From assembly GCA_002269645.1 (NCBI GenBank), contig NIVC01000761.1, positions 95,152-159,151 of the forward strand: a stretch of 64,000 bases of DNA, given 5' to 3'. Shown here in pieces: positions 31,328-41,758 of this stretch. This stretch comes from Macrostomum lignano. Taxonomy: Eukaryota. Below the pieces are notes generated by a model. The model saw only the letters and a program-made list of their open reading frames with translations. It did not search any database and was not told the origin of the DNA. Numbering within the stretch: position 1 is the stretch's first letter; the number at the start of each line of letters is the position of its first letter. Made by a program: the position numbers and the translations under genes.

Positions 31328-34300
31328 ATGCCAACAAATGACGCAAAAAAGTCCGCAGTTTTGAGTTCTACCGACCCAACTGACGCTGAACTGACACCTG
31401 ACGACAAAGCAGACACTGAAGAGCAAATGGACGCTCAGAATTCTGACGAAGGTTCTGCTGATCGAACTCGCTCCTCCTCAGTGATTGACAGCATGAAGGA
31501 CATCCTAGTCAGCCTTACGGACGATGGACTGGACAAGCTGTGGAAACTTGTGCCGACATTGTCAGAAGAAGAAGTCAACTTTCGAGACAAGAACGGCAAC
31601 GGATGGCTGCACTGGCTGGCCGTGGCTAAAAACTCTCGAGGAGTTGATCAGAACCGTCTGGTCGGCCTGGTCCACGCCTTCGCAGCTGCAGGCATCAACT
31701 ATAACATGCGAAATAAGACTGGGAATTCCGCGTTGCACTTTGCGCTGGCCTGCTCGACGCCTCTGAGATTCGGTAACGCCCTGCTCAAGGTACGGTGCTT
31801 GACGAAAGATGGAAGATTCATTTTGTTGTAACCCGGGTCGGTTTGGGTGCCCAGTCCCGAGTACAATATATATTATACGTAATATACAGGCGTAGTGACG
31901 CTCTGTCTGTACTTTTATGGATAAGAGCAGGCGTGACGACGCTCTGTGATAATAATTCGATCCCTCTGGTGTTGTGACACTCAGAGTTCACGCTGCGGCT
32001 CGAGGTGTGGTGACACTCTCGAGTGCTTCTATTCTCTATACCGTAGGGCGTACGCAATATATATGGTAAACGGTACAGTACTACAATACGCTATATGCTC
32101 TCCCGGCGTTATGACGCTCTGGCAAGAACTCCCTGCAGCTTAACAAGCTCCCCAGAAAAGAATGAACTCAAGCAGCAGACGGCTTACCAGTGGCCAAATT
32201 GCCGTTCGTACGTTTATTGCTCGTAGGTCTCAAGCGCAGGTTCGCACGTTTGTTGATTGGCTCGTGTAGGTCTCAAGCGCGGCTTCTAATTTCTTCGCAA
32301 TTCTCAAAGACTCTTTTCAAAGACTGACTTCTCAATTGGGCTCTCGGGTTTCTGTTATCGTAGGTAGCTAATGTCGCTGTTTCTTACTCAAGTCAAGTCT
32401 CGCGCTTGCTATCTCACGCACGCAGGGCGTGGGCAAACCCAGAGTCGCACAATAAATAGCACCCAAACCCTGGGGCAGACGGCCCCACCGGCTAAGCCCA
32501 ACAAAACAAACAAACTACCCAAAAAATAGACTGGCCGCGTCGGCCGGCCAATCAAAACCCCGCCTAGGGGAAGGGGCCGCACCCGCGCCAAAGCTGGCCC
32601 GGCCGCAGCCAACCAGCCCTGAGCACGGGGCAGGGGCACGGCTGGGGAGGGGCACGCGCAAAGCCCGGCCGCCGGCCAAACCCTGCCACGCCCGCCAACC
32701 CCCCCCCCCTAGCCAGCCCCAAAGTGCAACGCGCCCTGCCAACCGACAAGGGCGCATGCACTACAATTTAAACTTAGGTGCATGGGGATTTGATACGCTG
32801 GGGCATATTTGGCGCATGCAGTCACAGCGTTGAGGCAAATTCTGACATTACACAATCATGAGGCGTATACTCTCCTAGTAGAGTATTTAACAGCTTCAAC
32901 TTTCTCTTCTTCAGACCTGTGCACTTTTAATGGATCACTGACGTATAACTGTAGCTGTGTCCGCATGAGAGAATGAAGCAGTTCCTCCCCCCTTCCGTGA
33001 AGGTTCTTTCTTAATAAATAAATTGAAATAGTTTCTGTCCAACAGGTGAATTTCCTAGTTGTCCAACAGGTGAGGTTCCTGTTTAACAGGTGAGGTTCCT
33101 GTCCAACAGGTGAGGTTCCTGTCTAGCAGGTGAGGTTCCTGTCCAACAGGTGAATTTCCTTAGTTGTCCAACAGGTGAGGTTTCTGTCCAACAGGTGAAT
33201 TTCCTTAGTTGTCCAACAGGTGAGGTTTCTGTTCAACAGGTGAATTTCCTAGTTGTCCAACAGGTGAGGTTTCTGTCCAACAGGTGAATTTCCTAGTTGT
33301 CCAACAGGTGAGGTTTCTGTCCAACAGGTGAGGTTTCTGTCCAACAGGTGAGGTTTCTGTCAAACAGGTGAGGTTCCTGTCAAACAGGTGAGGTTCCTGT
33401 CAAACAGGTGAGGTTCCTGTCAAACAGGTGAGGTTCCTGTCCAACAGGTGAGGTTCCTGTCCAACAGGTGAGGTTCCTGTCAAACAGGTGAGGTTCCTGT
33501 CAAACAGGTGAGGTTCCTGTCCAACAGGTGAGGTTCCTGTCAAACAGGTGATCGTGAAGTTCCTTTCAAACAGTTGAATTATGCATTTCACAGGTTGAAG
33601 CAGTCATGTGTCGTCCTATTTTAGCCCTATTTTTAACCTACAGATTTTTAACCTATATACGTGAACTTGTTTATGGAACCTGTCTGCACCAATCTTACGA
33701 GTTGATGCTATTTACTAAAATGAATTAGAACTATAAAAACTTATTAGAACAATTGTTGGGCCACTAAGATCCAGCCGAACAGAAGCCAGTAAAGGTGTGA
33801 CAGCAGGTGTGACAGCAGTTCCAATCCCTAAATTCCCATCAGATTGGCATCGACCCAACATTTGTGAACGACAAGGGCCGTCGGGCAGCCCAGTGCACGG
33901 CCAACCACAGCGCCCTGAGGACCCTGGAGATGTTCACGCCGCCCCTGGACGAGGCGATCCGACAAGGCGATCTGGAACAGGTGCAGCGGCTCGCCTCCTA
34001 CTGGGCGCGGATCGCCAATTATCACCTGGATCTGGCCAGGCGGTCTCCTGACATTCGAAACTTCCTGGAGGCTCGGCAGCCGGAGCTGCGGCTCATTCAC
34101 CGCTGCTTGGCGGGCGATGCTCGCGCTCTGAGGGAGGCCCTGGACTCGAACCCAGAACTGCAGCTCAATAACATGGATGAGAGCTACATTAACGAGGAGG
34201 GTCGCTGCCTCCGACTGCCGCTAATCTATCAGCTGGTGTCCTGCCCGTACACCTATCCGGTGGCGCAGATGCTGCTGGAACGAACTCGACCAGATGTCAC

Positions 34301-40300: not shown

Positions 40301-41758
40301 CCCTCTGTAGCTGGCGCCCCCTCTGTAGTTGTAGTTGGCGCCCCCTCTGTAGTTGGCACTGCCCTCTCTGTAGCTGGCGCCCCCTCTGTAGTTGGCGCCC
40401 CCTCTGTAGTTGTAGCTGGCGCCCCCTCTGTAGTTGGCGCCCCCTCTGTAGTTGTAGTTGGCGCCCCCTCTGTAGTTGTAGCTGGCGCCCCCTCTGTAGT
40501 TGTAGCTGGCGCCCCCTCTGTAGTTGTAGCTGGCGCCCCCTCTGTAGTTGTAGCTGGCGCCCCCTCTGTAGTTGGCGCCCCCTCCGTAGCTTGCGCCCCT
40601 CTGTAGCTGGCGCCCTCCCTGTAGTTGTAGTTGGCGCCCCATCTGTAGTTGGTACAGTGATCATCCTTCACATGTTTTGTACTTTTATATTTATATGTGC
40701 GCCTTCATTTTACTTTAGTAGTTCACGTCAAAATCATCATCACCAACCGCAGTCAAAGTCCAGCTCAACAACCTCCGGAGCAGCAGCCCGTCGTCAGGCT
40801 GATGACTCGGCAGCCGCCACCCGGGCCTACTACCGACAGGCCATCCGGGCGGAGCGCCGAGACCCGGCCTGCTTCGCGCACAGCCTGCTCCTGCTGCACC
40901 TCAACCTGCAGGACGCTGTGAAGCGAGACTCTCTGGCCGACGTGGACAGTCTGCTGTCGGACACCTGGCCGGATATGCCAGTCTGCCTGGTGGACCAAGT
41001 CAATCGGATTTTTCCCAGGCAGCCGCACAGATTCCCCAGCCTCATCGGGTTGTGCATCGATCAGCAGCGAGAGGATATCGGGTGCCGCCTGCTGGAAGCT
41101 GGAGTTCCCCCACCGGCTGACGTGAGTAGTAGTAGTAGTAGTAGTAGTAATAGTAGTAGTAGTAGTAGTAGTAGTAGTAGTAGTAGTAGTAGTAGTAGTA
41201 GTAGTAGTAGTAGTAGTAGTAGTAGTAGTAGTAGTAGTAGTAGTAGTAGTAGTAGTAGTAGTAGTAGTAGTAGTAGTAGTAGTAGTAGTAGTAGTAGTAG
41301 TAGTAGTAGTAGTAGTAGTAGTAGTAGTAGTAGTAGTAGTAGTAGTAGTAGTAGTAGTAGTAGTAGTAGCTTTATGTACTCCCCTCCAGCCCATCAGCAC
41401 CTCGGACGGCACCGCCAAGCGCCTGGAAGTTCGAGCTCGCGAGTCCGGCTTGAACCGATTGGCCGACGAAATCGTCCGCCTTCGGCAGGCGGCCGCGGCC
41501 AGCGAGGGAACGAACGGTGGACCGGCCGTCCGGCTGCCTGGCGACTTCGCCGACGAGGTTGGCACGATTCTATCGGTTGGCACCGAGGACACGTTCGCTG
41601 TGCCCGCCGCTGTCCAGGCCGCCAAGTCGAAGCAGAAGCGGCAACAGCAGCACCAGGGCAAGGGAGGCGGCAAGTCTCGAGGAGGGAAGAAGGCGGCCGC
41701 TAGCAAAGGAAAAGCAGACGAGGAACCGGGGAGCAGCGAAGTGTGCGCGCTGCTCTGA
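31328..41758 (+). CDS. Ankyrin-repeat protein (~816 aa) with C-terminal basic region and CaaX (CALL)
   Basis: Exons 31328-31789, 33843-34358, 36002-36445, 39291-39485, 40126-40221 (or -40212), 40753-41121 and 41390-41758, all phase-0 GT-AG. Ankyrin motifs DKNGNGWLHWLA, NKTGNSALHFAL...LLK|IGIDPTFVNDKGRRA, DKKSHSLAHWAV and TDY|CNRTALDY span the junctions in frame. Confidence 0.85.
31824..32765. mobile_element. Candidate solo LTR (942 bp) in ankyrin-gene intron 1
   Basis: Termini TGTTG...CTACA flanked by ATTT on both sides (31820-31823, 32766-32769); internal AATAAA signals and a GC-rich block; non-coding. Confidence 0.5.
33040..33552. repeat. 19-bp minisatellite AACAGGTGAGGTTCCTGTC in ankyrin intron 1
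   Basis: Tandem copies. Confidence 0.95.
34400..35325. repeat. 44-bp minisatellite TGTTAGTTAGATAGTAGTGTCTCCTGTTAGACAGATGTGTTACC in ankyrin intron 2
   Basis: Tandem copies. Confidence 0.95.
35520..35955. repeat. 20-bp minisatellite AATGAAGTTCAGGTTCTGTG in ankyrin intron 2
   Basis: Tandem copies. Confidence 0.95.
36515..38290. repeat. 24-bp minisatellite GTGTATGACCATTCTCATGTAGCT in ankyrin intron 3
   Basis: Tandem copies with higher-order blocks; explains the spurious 650-aa ORFs. Confidence 0.97.
38835..39200. repeat. 21-bp minisatellite TATGACCATTCTCATCTGATC, related to the 24-bp array
   Basis: Shared TATGACCATTCTCAT core. Confidence 0.9.
39505..39990. repeat. 21-bp minisatellite AACAGGTGTAAGCTACTGTCT in ankyrin intron 4
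   Basis: Tandem copies. Confidence 0.95.
40270..40650. repeat. GGCGCCCCCTCTGTAGTT(GTAGCT) minisatellite in ankyrin intron 5
   Basis: Tandem copies. Confidence 0.93.
41125..41369. repeat. (TAG)n microsatellite filling ankyrin intron 6
   Basis: About 80 units, one TAA interruption. Confidence 0.98.

Follow-up and report, generated by a model that had tools for sequence, protein, structure and literature searches.

A large ankyrin-repeat protein of Macrostomum lignano with a C-terminal CaaX box, a candidate lipid-anchored scaffold

We analysed a stretch of 64,000 nucleotides (nt) of the flatworm Macrostomum lignano (assembly GCA_002269645.1, contig NIVC01000761.1, positions 95,152 to 159,151 of the forward strand), hereafter referred to as the window, in which a gene on the + strand (31328-41758) encodes a large ankyrin-repeat protein that ends in a CaaX box. 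Seven exons of this gene, identified by reading of the sequence and scripted assembly, splice to a product of 818 residues. The features of this product suggest that it is probably geranylgeranylated and, as such, a membrane-tethered ankyrin solenoid on a flexible basic tail of ~85 residues.

Gene structure and the ankyrin body

The lengths of all seven exons are multiples of three, and the introns are all in phase 0 and of the GT...AG type (Table 1). An earlier reading of the same stretch, made from its letters alone (the sequence-only reading), had arrived at seven exons in frame and ~816 residues; the exact length is 818 residues, and the product ends as quoted there, in ...KSKQKRQQQHQGKGGGKSRGGKKAAASKGKADEEPGSSEVCALL before the stop codon (in the shorter quotation, ...KGKADEEPGSSEVCALL), the last 15 residues being KADEEPGSSEVCALL. 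The sole close database relative is P0001, a protein of 777 residues from M. lignano (E=6e-239, 49-50% identity) with the C-terminus ...KKKAKNNKVEESEVCTIL. The alignment with P0001 is collinear from residue 53 of the window protein to the last residue and free of gaps at all six exon junctions, which excludes a chance chain of open reading frames (ORFs) and, at the level of sequence comparison, confirms the model as a real gene. The junction between exons 1 and 2 (ALLK/IGID) is itself conserved in P0001, and a hidden Markov model (HMM) of the C-terminal module encoded by exon 6 matches the same module in the other family members described below. The acceptor of exon 4 is a NAGNAG site at which splicing could occur at 39285 or 39291; because P0001 retains the two extra residues, 39285 is favoured. 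The model is least secure at its start codon. The ATG at 31328 is the earliest start after an in-frame stop. Another M. lignano model, P0166, also begins with an acidic extension of comparable length, but this extension shows no alignment with the 52 acidic residues at the N-terminus of the window protein, so that a start at Met56 is possible.

The 3' part of the gene could be wrong in a manner that would affect the CaaX box: with an alternative last exon, or with intron 5 or 6 retained, the real product would lack the box. Intron 5 (40222-40752, 531 nt) contains no in-frame stop and its retention would keep the frame, retention of intron 6 would add a run of serines followed by a frameshift and loss of the box, and no canonical AATAAA was found within 570 nt 3' of the stop codon, a result that is in itself uninformative. 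P0001, however, aligns with exons 5, 6 and 7 to its last residue and carries no insert at the position of intron 5 or intron 6, and the splice sites are canonical throughout; we therefore consider this possibility very improbable. A search for a GTRAG donor-like site inside exon 7 found none.

Table 1. Exons of the ankyrin-repeat gene and features of its product, in window coordinates
Feature	Position	Strand	Residues	Description
Exon 1	31328-31789	+	1-154	Acidic N-terminal region, probably disordered (1-52), then helices and the beginning of ankyrin cluster 1; donor CTCAAG/GTACGG; P0001 match from residue 53
Ankyrin cluster 1, exon 1 part	31580-31789	+	85-154	Pfam Ank_4/Ank_2 and PDB profile matches
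Exon 2	33843-34358	+	155-326	End of ankyrin cluster 1 and family signature module; acceptor cccatcag/ATT, donor TTCAAG/GTAAGC
Ankyrin cluster 1, exon 2 part	33843-33935	+	155-185	Pfam and PDB profile matches
Family signature module	33927-34280	+	183-300	Directly after ankyrin cluster 1; ankyrin-like at 78-94% in hhalign
Exon 3	36002-36445	+	327-474	Degenerate ankyrin-like helical repeats; block 320-400 against ankyrin blocks 95-96% (hhalign)
Exon 4	39285-39485	+	475-541	First part of ankyrin cluster 2 (DKKSHSLAHWAVIFERRFILKQVL)
Ankyrin cluster 2, exon 4 part	39294-39485	+	478-541	PDB profile matches, hhalign
Exon 5	40126-40221	+	542-573	Second part of ankyrin cluster 2 (CNRTALDYSLGADQDFMHQSLLKAADAQL)
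Ankyrin cluster 2, exon 5 part	40126-40221	+	542-573	PDB profile matches, hhalign
Exon 6	40753-41121	+	574-696	Ser/Ala-rich linker and conserved C-terminal helical module
Exon 7	41390-41758	+	697-818	End of C-terminal module, disordered tail, CaaX box and stop; P0001 match to last residue
Low-complexity tail	41504-41755	+	735-818	~85 residues, predicted non-helical
Acidic-hydrophobic patch	41540-41590	+	747-763	GDFADEVGTILSVGTED here, DDFSDEGETIVSVDTQN in P0001; conserved inside the fast-evolving tail
Lys/Arg-rich stretch	41624-41713	+	775-804	KSKQKRQQQHQGKGGGKSRGGKKAAASKGK; 11 Lys/Arg, no acidic residue; P0001 counterpart KKPKKKKKKHHHHGDKAKGGKGKKKAK
Acidic/flexible spacer	41714-41743	+	805-814	ADEEPGSSEV; 'EE..SEV' conserved in P0001 (VEESEV)
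CaaX box	41744-41755	+	815-818	C815-A-L-L818; TGA at 41756-41758

The body of the protein is built of ankyrin repeats. The Pfam model Ank_4 matches residues 114-142 above its curated threshold (24.2 bits against a gathering value of 22.7, E=4e-5), Ank_2 falls just under its gathering value at residues 77-160, and the Pfam scan of the window protein found no domain other than ANK. A profile of the window protein and P0001 matches ankyrin domains in PDB at positions ~70-200 (cluster 1) and ~480-585 (cluster 2) with E-values down to 1.6e-5, the matches to cluster 2 (positions 481-584) being to ZDHHC17, NF-kB p100 and Notch, and cluster 2 aligns with cluster 1 at an hhalign probability of 99%. Thus, of the architecture proposed in the sequence-only reading, the two ankyrin clusters are borne out, cluster 1 by Pfam Ank_4 and both by the PDB profile matches. 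The 'unrecognised helical segments' placed between them have to be redefined as mostly degenerate ankyrin repeats (hhalign 78-95% over residues 183-400): in profile-profile comparisons of blocks cut from the family alignment, hhalign relates residues 183-265, 236-330 and 320-400 to canonical ankyrin blocks with probabilities of 78%, 94.5% and 95-96%, respectively, and gives weaker values (18-38%) for residues 395-478 and 598-735. The top PDB matches of the family profile are long ankyrin stacks, i.e. designed repeat proteins (DARPins), NOMPC, tankyrase and ankyrin-1. From these profile comparisons, we conclude that the body of ~680 residues is a single ankyrin-type helical-repeat solenoid with two canonical clusters and degenerate repeats between and after them, and that this solenoid is unusually divergent in Macrostomum.

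The CaaX box and the tail across the family

When 1.84 billion representative proteins were searched exhaustively with HMMER, the profile of the window protein and P0001 gave 420 matches, five of them below 1e-30. Several relatives of 727-755 residues match this profile in one stretch over nearly their whole length, among them P0003, P0004 and P0005, which give full-length single-stretch matches with E-values from 6e-41 to 5e-33. These proteins share a signature module with the consensus PGLWxAV..SWC..TNEFVHxxLAGD, the copy in the window protein being divergent (FTPPLDEAI..SYWARI..LIHRCLAGD), and an HMM of the module matches about 58-60 representative proteins over nearly its full length. The window protein has both the signature module and the collinear architecture through the C-terminal module that characterise the family. 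All 11 aligned members match Pfam Ank_2 and Ank_4, one of them also weakly the LRRK2 ANK-repeat model, and no other domain family was found when these 11 were compared with Pfam. A profile search that started from the alignment of 11 family members returned overwhelmingly generic ankyrin proteins, and one with a 50-member alignment of the signature module returned a single Elysia fragment. The names of the members are all automatic ('uncharacterized', 'hypothetical', 'ankyrin-1', 'tankyrase-2-like'), and the latter two labels reflect repeat similarity only. A literature search with the M. lignano gene identifier found nothing. As far as the libraries searched show, this is an undescribed animal protein family, and the remark in the sequence-only reading that the family was not one it recognised was a fair one.

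Counted among members with a named source, every member is spiralian, and six phyla are represented: Platyhelminthes (Macrostomum lignano), Brachiopoda (Lingula), Nemertea (Tubulanus), Mollusca (Pecten, Mytilus, Tegillarca, Solemya, Babylonia, Plakobranchus and Elysia), Annelida (Owenia) and Rotifera (Adineta and Didymodactylos). The lineage was checked for three of these members, and a restriction of the family to Spiralia is provisional.

As proposed in the sequence-only reading, the tail of the window protein ends in CALL: Cys815 lies exactly four residues from the C-terminus, and a2 and X are both Leu, in agreement with the positional and a2X rules for a CaaX box. Among human G-protein subunits, CALL, CAIL and CTIL are the boxes of G-gamma-3, -2 and -4, respectively. 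The a2X residues are the main determinant of CaaX recognition (PMC11304957), and Leu, Phe, Ile, Val or Met at X favours geranylgeranyltransferase I (GGTase-I; PMC10940682). The family boxes CVLL, CAIL, CTIL, CIIL and CTIM are identical to the tetrapeptides of yeast Rho1, Cdc42, Rsr1, Rho2 and Rho4, which are listed as canonical GGTase-I substrates (PMC11304957). The sequence-only reading had stated in general that C-a-a-L termini are substrates of this enzyme. The sharing with G-protein gamma subunits and with the yeast GTPases is limited to the last four residues.

The Cys at this position is conserved across phyla. In the nearest clade of a neighbour-joining tree, which contains the window protein, all seven full-length members end in CxxX, and the boxes recorded in this clade are CTIL in P0001 and Lingula, CQLL in Tubulanus, CDIL in Pecten, CVLL in P0005, CAVQ in P0015 and CTVI in a Mytilus fragment; the tails that lead from the last helical module to the Cys comprise 34-97 residues and are otherwise unalignable. 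The M. lignano copies end in EVCTIL (P0001) or EVCAIL (P0165). A separate clade of short forms (324-536 residues), in which an ankyrin cluster at the N-terminus is followed by the signature module and then by a disordered tail, has a CxxX end in eight of eight known members (CVIS in four, CVVS, CTIL, CTIM and CILL in one each), seven of the eight being placed in the tree, and two rotifer long forms end in CIIL and CSIF. Among the top 150 representative matches, CxxX ends occur in 20 of the 60 proteins with the signature and in 5 of the 90 others (Fisher p=1e-5); three of these five turn out to be family fragments. At least eight family entries without a CaaX box are fragments that end just past the equivalent of the exon 3/4 junction. 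Orthologs lacking the terminal Cys, which the sequence-only reading had named as an observation that would speak against it, were thus looked for, and the Cys at -4 is kept in the seven nearest-clade proteins, the eight short forms and the two rotifer proteins. Its assignment to the geranylgeranyl type fits the X = Leu of the window protein and does not extend to the family, in which X is Leu, Ile, Phe, Ser, Met or Gln.

Several paralogous clades of the family are without a CaaX box, and the lipid signal looks ancestral and lost in some paralogs. One of these clades (P0028, P0036, P0110 and P0129) has another shared ending, ..F/Y-G-G/L-V/L (..LSLLGLV, ..MNFGGV, ..FTKYGLV, ..FSKFGLL), which suggests an alternative conserved C-terminal signal in this branch.

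The tail that carries the box is of low identity between the window protein and P0001 outside two patches, and AlphaFold2 predicts no secondary structure after residue 735 (both models agree; pLDDT, the predicted local distance difference test score, is 23-29 in the full-protein model, i.e. of low confidence). The acidic-hydrophobic patch in this tail is a possible short linear interaction motif. The net charge of the last 40 residues is +5 in the window protein and +12 in P0001, and among the short forms it is +6 to +11 in six of eight, P0108 (+1) and P0128 (-2) being the other two. Membrane binding of prenylated proteins follows a two-signal model in which the prenyl group is combined with either a polybasic stretch or a palmitoyl group (PMC10940682). 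The short forms with CVIS or CVVS have the Cys in a K-Ras4B-like KSK[LMT]C context, and bivalve tails have extra cysteines in place of the basic charge (KSCSCDIL, KKSCTCTVI), which suggests that the second membrane signal may alternate within the family as it does among Ras isoforms. The Lys-rich region to which the sequence-only reading had drawn attention characterises Macrostomum and the short forms and is not family-wide, the bivalves having extra cysteines; the caveat attached to it, that an acidic DEE lies between the basic stretch and the box, was justified, given the net charge of the last 20 residues (-2) and the conservation of 'EE..SEVC' with P0001.

Several observations weigh against a lipid anchor of the proposed kind. 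The last 20 residues have the net charge of -2 just mentioned, and the basic stretch stops 10 residues ahead of the Cys, with four acidic residues in between. Substrates of this transferase (GGT1) prefer Ser or Lys at position -1 and lysines at positions -1 to -7, and the Cys follows a small, flexible and hydrophilic linker of ~11 residues (PMC1175975). In the window protein position -1 is Val, positions -1 to -7 are acidic and without Lys, and this context could lower the efficiency of modification or weaken electrostatic binding; the 11-residue linker KADEEPGSSEV is small, flexible and hydrophilic, as PrePS requires (PMC1175975). The CDIL box of Pecten has an acidic a1 that is unfavourable for PrePS (PMC1175975), the paralogous clades without a box indicate that the body can function without a lipid, and the M. 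lignano model P0166 (866 residues) is annotated with a frameshifted tail in which the polybasic end and the box are lost. The basic stretch also fits the pattern of a bipartite nuclear localisation signal (NLS). Finally, AlphaFold2 gave no reliable three-dimensional model, pLDDT being 41 for the full protein with a two-sequence alignment and 43 for the exon-2 peptide. P0165 and P0166 are near-identical M. lignano copies (Mlig022599 g3/g4), of which P0166 has an acidic N-terminal extension of 70 residues; P0166 could be an allele or a pseudogene, the genome being polyploid, or else the product of an assembly or annotation error.

Two alternatives build on these observations. In the first, the terminal CxxX would not be lipidated in vivo and would be merely tolerated, or serve as a hydrophobic or PDZ-type ligand, or contribute a Cys for redox or metal chemistry, so that the ankyrin scaffold would be soluble; this would account for the acidic local context, the Val at -1, the CDIL of Pecten and the paralogs without a box. 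The invariant feature of the family, however, is a Cys at exactly -4, with a1, a2 and X varying among canonical prenylation boxes, whereas PDZ ligands would conserve positions 0 and -2, and this Cys is held at the ends of rapidly diverging tails in two separate clades and in rotifers. On this balance, we regard the absence of a lipid as unlikely. Alternatively, the protein could be prenylated while the Lys/Arg-rich stretch acts as an NLS, and the tether would then be to the nuclear envelope or its inner membrane, as for lamins with their combination of NLS and CaaX box. By inspection, the elements KR-x12-RGGKK (residues 779-797) fit the bipartite pattern; P0001 has PKKKKKK, and, unlike in tails of the K-Ras4B type, an acidic spacer lies between the basic stretch and the Cys. 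The boxes of lamin type are, however, farnesyl-type while X is Leu here, and basic charge is scarce in most of the family tails other than those of Macrostomum and the short forms, so that an NLS is not a feature of the family; a nuclear tether thus appears improbable to about the same degree, and we favour prenylation with anchoring at a cytosolic membrane face.

Introns and neighbouring genes

The region is eukaryotic in character, with spliced genes and introns filled with minisatellites. Over positions 30043-41369 of the window, each intron and the 1.2 kb upstream of the gene have their own large tandem array, with differing units: 16-mer x74 (ending 87 nt before the ATG), 20-mer, 44-mer x21, 20-mer x22, 24-mer x75, 21-mer, 21-mer x24, 24/42-mer and (AGT)82. 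The intron 1 minisatellite (33031-33551) consists of 25 copies of the 20-mer TTCCTGTCCAACAG/GTGAGG, 19 of them exact (CAGGTGAG), and that of intron 4 (39500-40004) of 24 copies of the 21-mer CTACTGTCTAACAG/GTGTAAG, 14 of them exact (CAGGTGTAAG); in both, acceptor-like motifs lie next to donor-like motifs, and the units resemble tandem recursive-splice-site motifs, which may be used in splicing or may stem from a mobile element. Intron 6 (41122-41389) is almost wholly (AGT)82 from the 5' splice site onward (GAC/GTGAGTAGTAGT...). No RNA genes were found when the whole window was scanned with Rfam and for tRNAs, and on the minus strand of the locus there are no ORFs besides those encoded by repeats.

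Upstream of the gene lie a C2H2 zinc-finger exon on the + strand (12173-12478) and, on the - strand, an exon for a KH-domain RNA-binding protein (21956-25087; KH_1, E=5.5e-17, followed by a Gly/Ala/Pro-rich low-complexity region). Downstream, three tandem paralogous ORFs on the + strand (42327-43169, 47429-48043 with 51152-51472, and 53119-53805) have hydrophobic, signal-peptide-like N-termini and share the Cys-rich sequence ...CCTRPASFHSILASNCVSPAHYQRLDLDIA.CAFRCRAAPRCRAF...; one of the three has a weak sub-threshold match to PAN_1, their only Pfam match, and they look like a cluster of genes for small secreted proteins. The - strand of 57935-63890 contains long ORFs of near-identical acidic repeat units rich in Lys, Glu, Asp and Ala (...MRKVLEEDPESIGLSDAEARNALTVLNALENKKAGDTVSPEQLEALGKVAKMVEEGRDKVQKADE...) with no convincing Pfam match, which represent either one large gene with internal repeats or segments of recent duplication, and which continue beyond the end of the window. 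None of these neighbours points to a functional connection with the ankyrin gene.

The proposed membrane anchor and its place among known proteins

By combining the composition of the tail with the conservation of its end, we suggest the following scheme for a geranylgeranylated ankyrin protein: (i) cytosolic GGTase-I would attach a C20 geranylgeranyl group to Cys815, with X being Leu, (ii) RCE1 and then ICMT would remove -ALL and methylate the new C-terminus, (iii) the lipid together with the 11 Lys/Arg of residues 775-804 would hold the protein at the acidic cytosolic face of a membrane, most likely the plasma membrane, and (iv) the long flexible tail would allow the ankyrin solenoid to serve as a docking platform that recruits partner proteins to this membrane.

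The combination of an ankyrin platform with a CaaX anchor has precedents. MYPT3 (PPP1R16A) and TIMAP (PPP1R16B) are prenylated ankyrin-repeat subunits of protein phosphatase 1 (PP1), defined by a KVxF motif for PP1 docking ahead of the repeats and by a MyPhoNE motif, in which the CaaX box gives membrane association (PMC6737228). They resemble the window protein in that ankyrin repeats form an interaction platform and a CaaX box lies at the C-terminus, and this gross layout would be explained if the window protein were a divergent prenylated PP1 regulatory subunit of the same type. The window protein is, however, larger, with a much longer repeat body (~680 residues) and a family-specific module, and the similarity to MYPT3/TIMAP is only of the generic ankyrin kind: homology searches gave no MYPT-specific match, and the 'EVNF' ahead of repeat 1 is without a basic residue and lies in a column that is not conserved in the family. 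We consider a relationship of this kind hardly probable. In regular-expression searches, neither the window protein nor P0001 had a match to [KR][KR]?[VI]x[FW] or to MyPhoNE (R..Q[VIL][KR].[YW]), and membership of the PPP1R16 group was rejected. A second precedent is Legionella pneumophila AnkB, an F-box/ankyrin effector that is farnesylated by the host and anchored to membranes by a C-terminal CaaX box (PMC2916131). This likeness in plan does not extend further: AnkB is bacterial and small, its CaaX box is of the farnesyl type and it contains an F-box, whereas the window protein has neither an F-box nor another non-ANK Pfam domain. Membership of an AnkB-type F-box/ANK/CaaX group was likewise rejected, no F-box being found in Pfam at E<=1. 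Beyond generic repeats, the family appears unrelated to either precedent.

Comparisons with other membrane proteins give a similar picture. K-Ras4B and Rho proteins (prenyl group and polybasic stretch) as well as H-Ras and N-Ras (prenyl group and palmitoylated Cys) share with the family a disordered tail that ends in a CaaX box, and in the family the second signal is either Lys-rich (Macrostomum, and short forms ending in KSK[TM]CVIS) or consists of extra cysteines (bivalves); here, in contrast, the cargo is an ankyrin solenoid rather than a GTPase, and the window protein has its four acidic residues between the basic stretch and the Cys. ANK1-3, NOMPC and tankyrase resemble the window protein in having a long ankyrin stack as a membrane-proximal adaptor and are the best PDB matches of the family profile after DARPins, but they have no CaaX box and have other accessory domains; ankyrin-G is palmitoylated at an internal Cys.

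For the family as a whole, we put forward as an evenly balanced proposition that it consists of lipid-anchored ankyrin solenoids found throughout Spiralia, in long (~700-800 residues) and short (~320-540 residues) forms, that the prenylation box predates the divergence of flatworms, molluscs, brachiopods, nemerteans and rotifers, and that the second signal was exchanged between a polybasic stretch and palmitoylatable cysteines as in the Ras isoforms. Prenylated proteins are dominated by small GTPases, and to our knowledge animals have hardly any known ankyrin scaffolds anchored by a CaaX box besides MYPT3/TIMAP. Macrostomum lignano is a tractable animal, for which transgenesis and RNA interference exist. 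A family in at least six spiralian phyla appears to use a CaaX anchor that has been retained for hundreds of millions of years; the animal prenylome would thereby gain a class specific to one lineage, with no principle overturned, and, if the proposal is true, a Spiralia-wide family of this kind would be a lineage-specific organiser of the membrane cortex without a counterpart in standard model animals.

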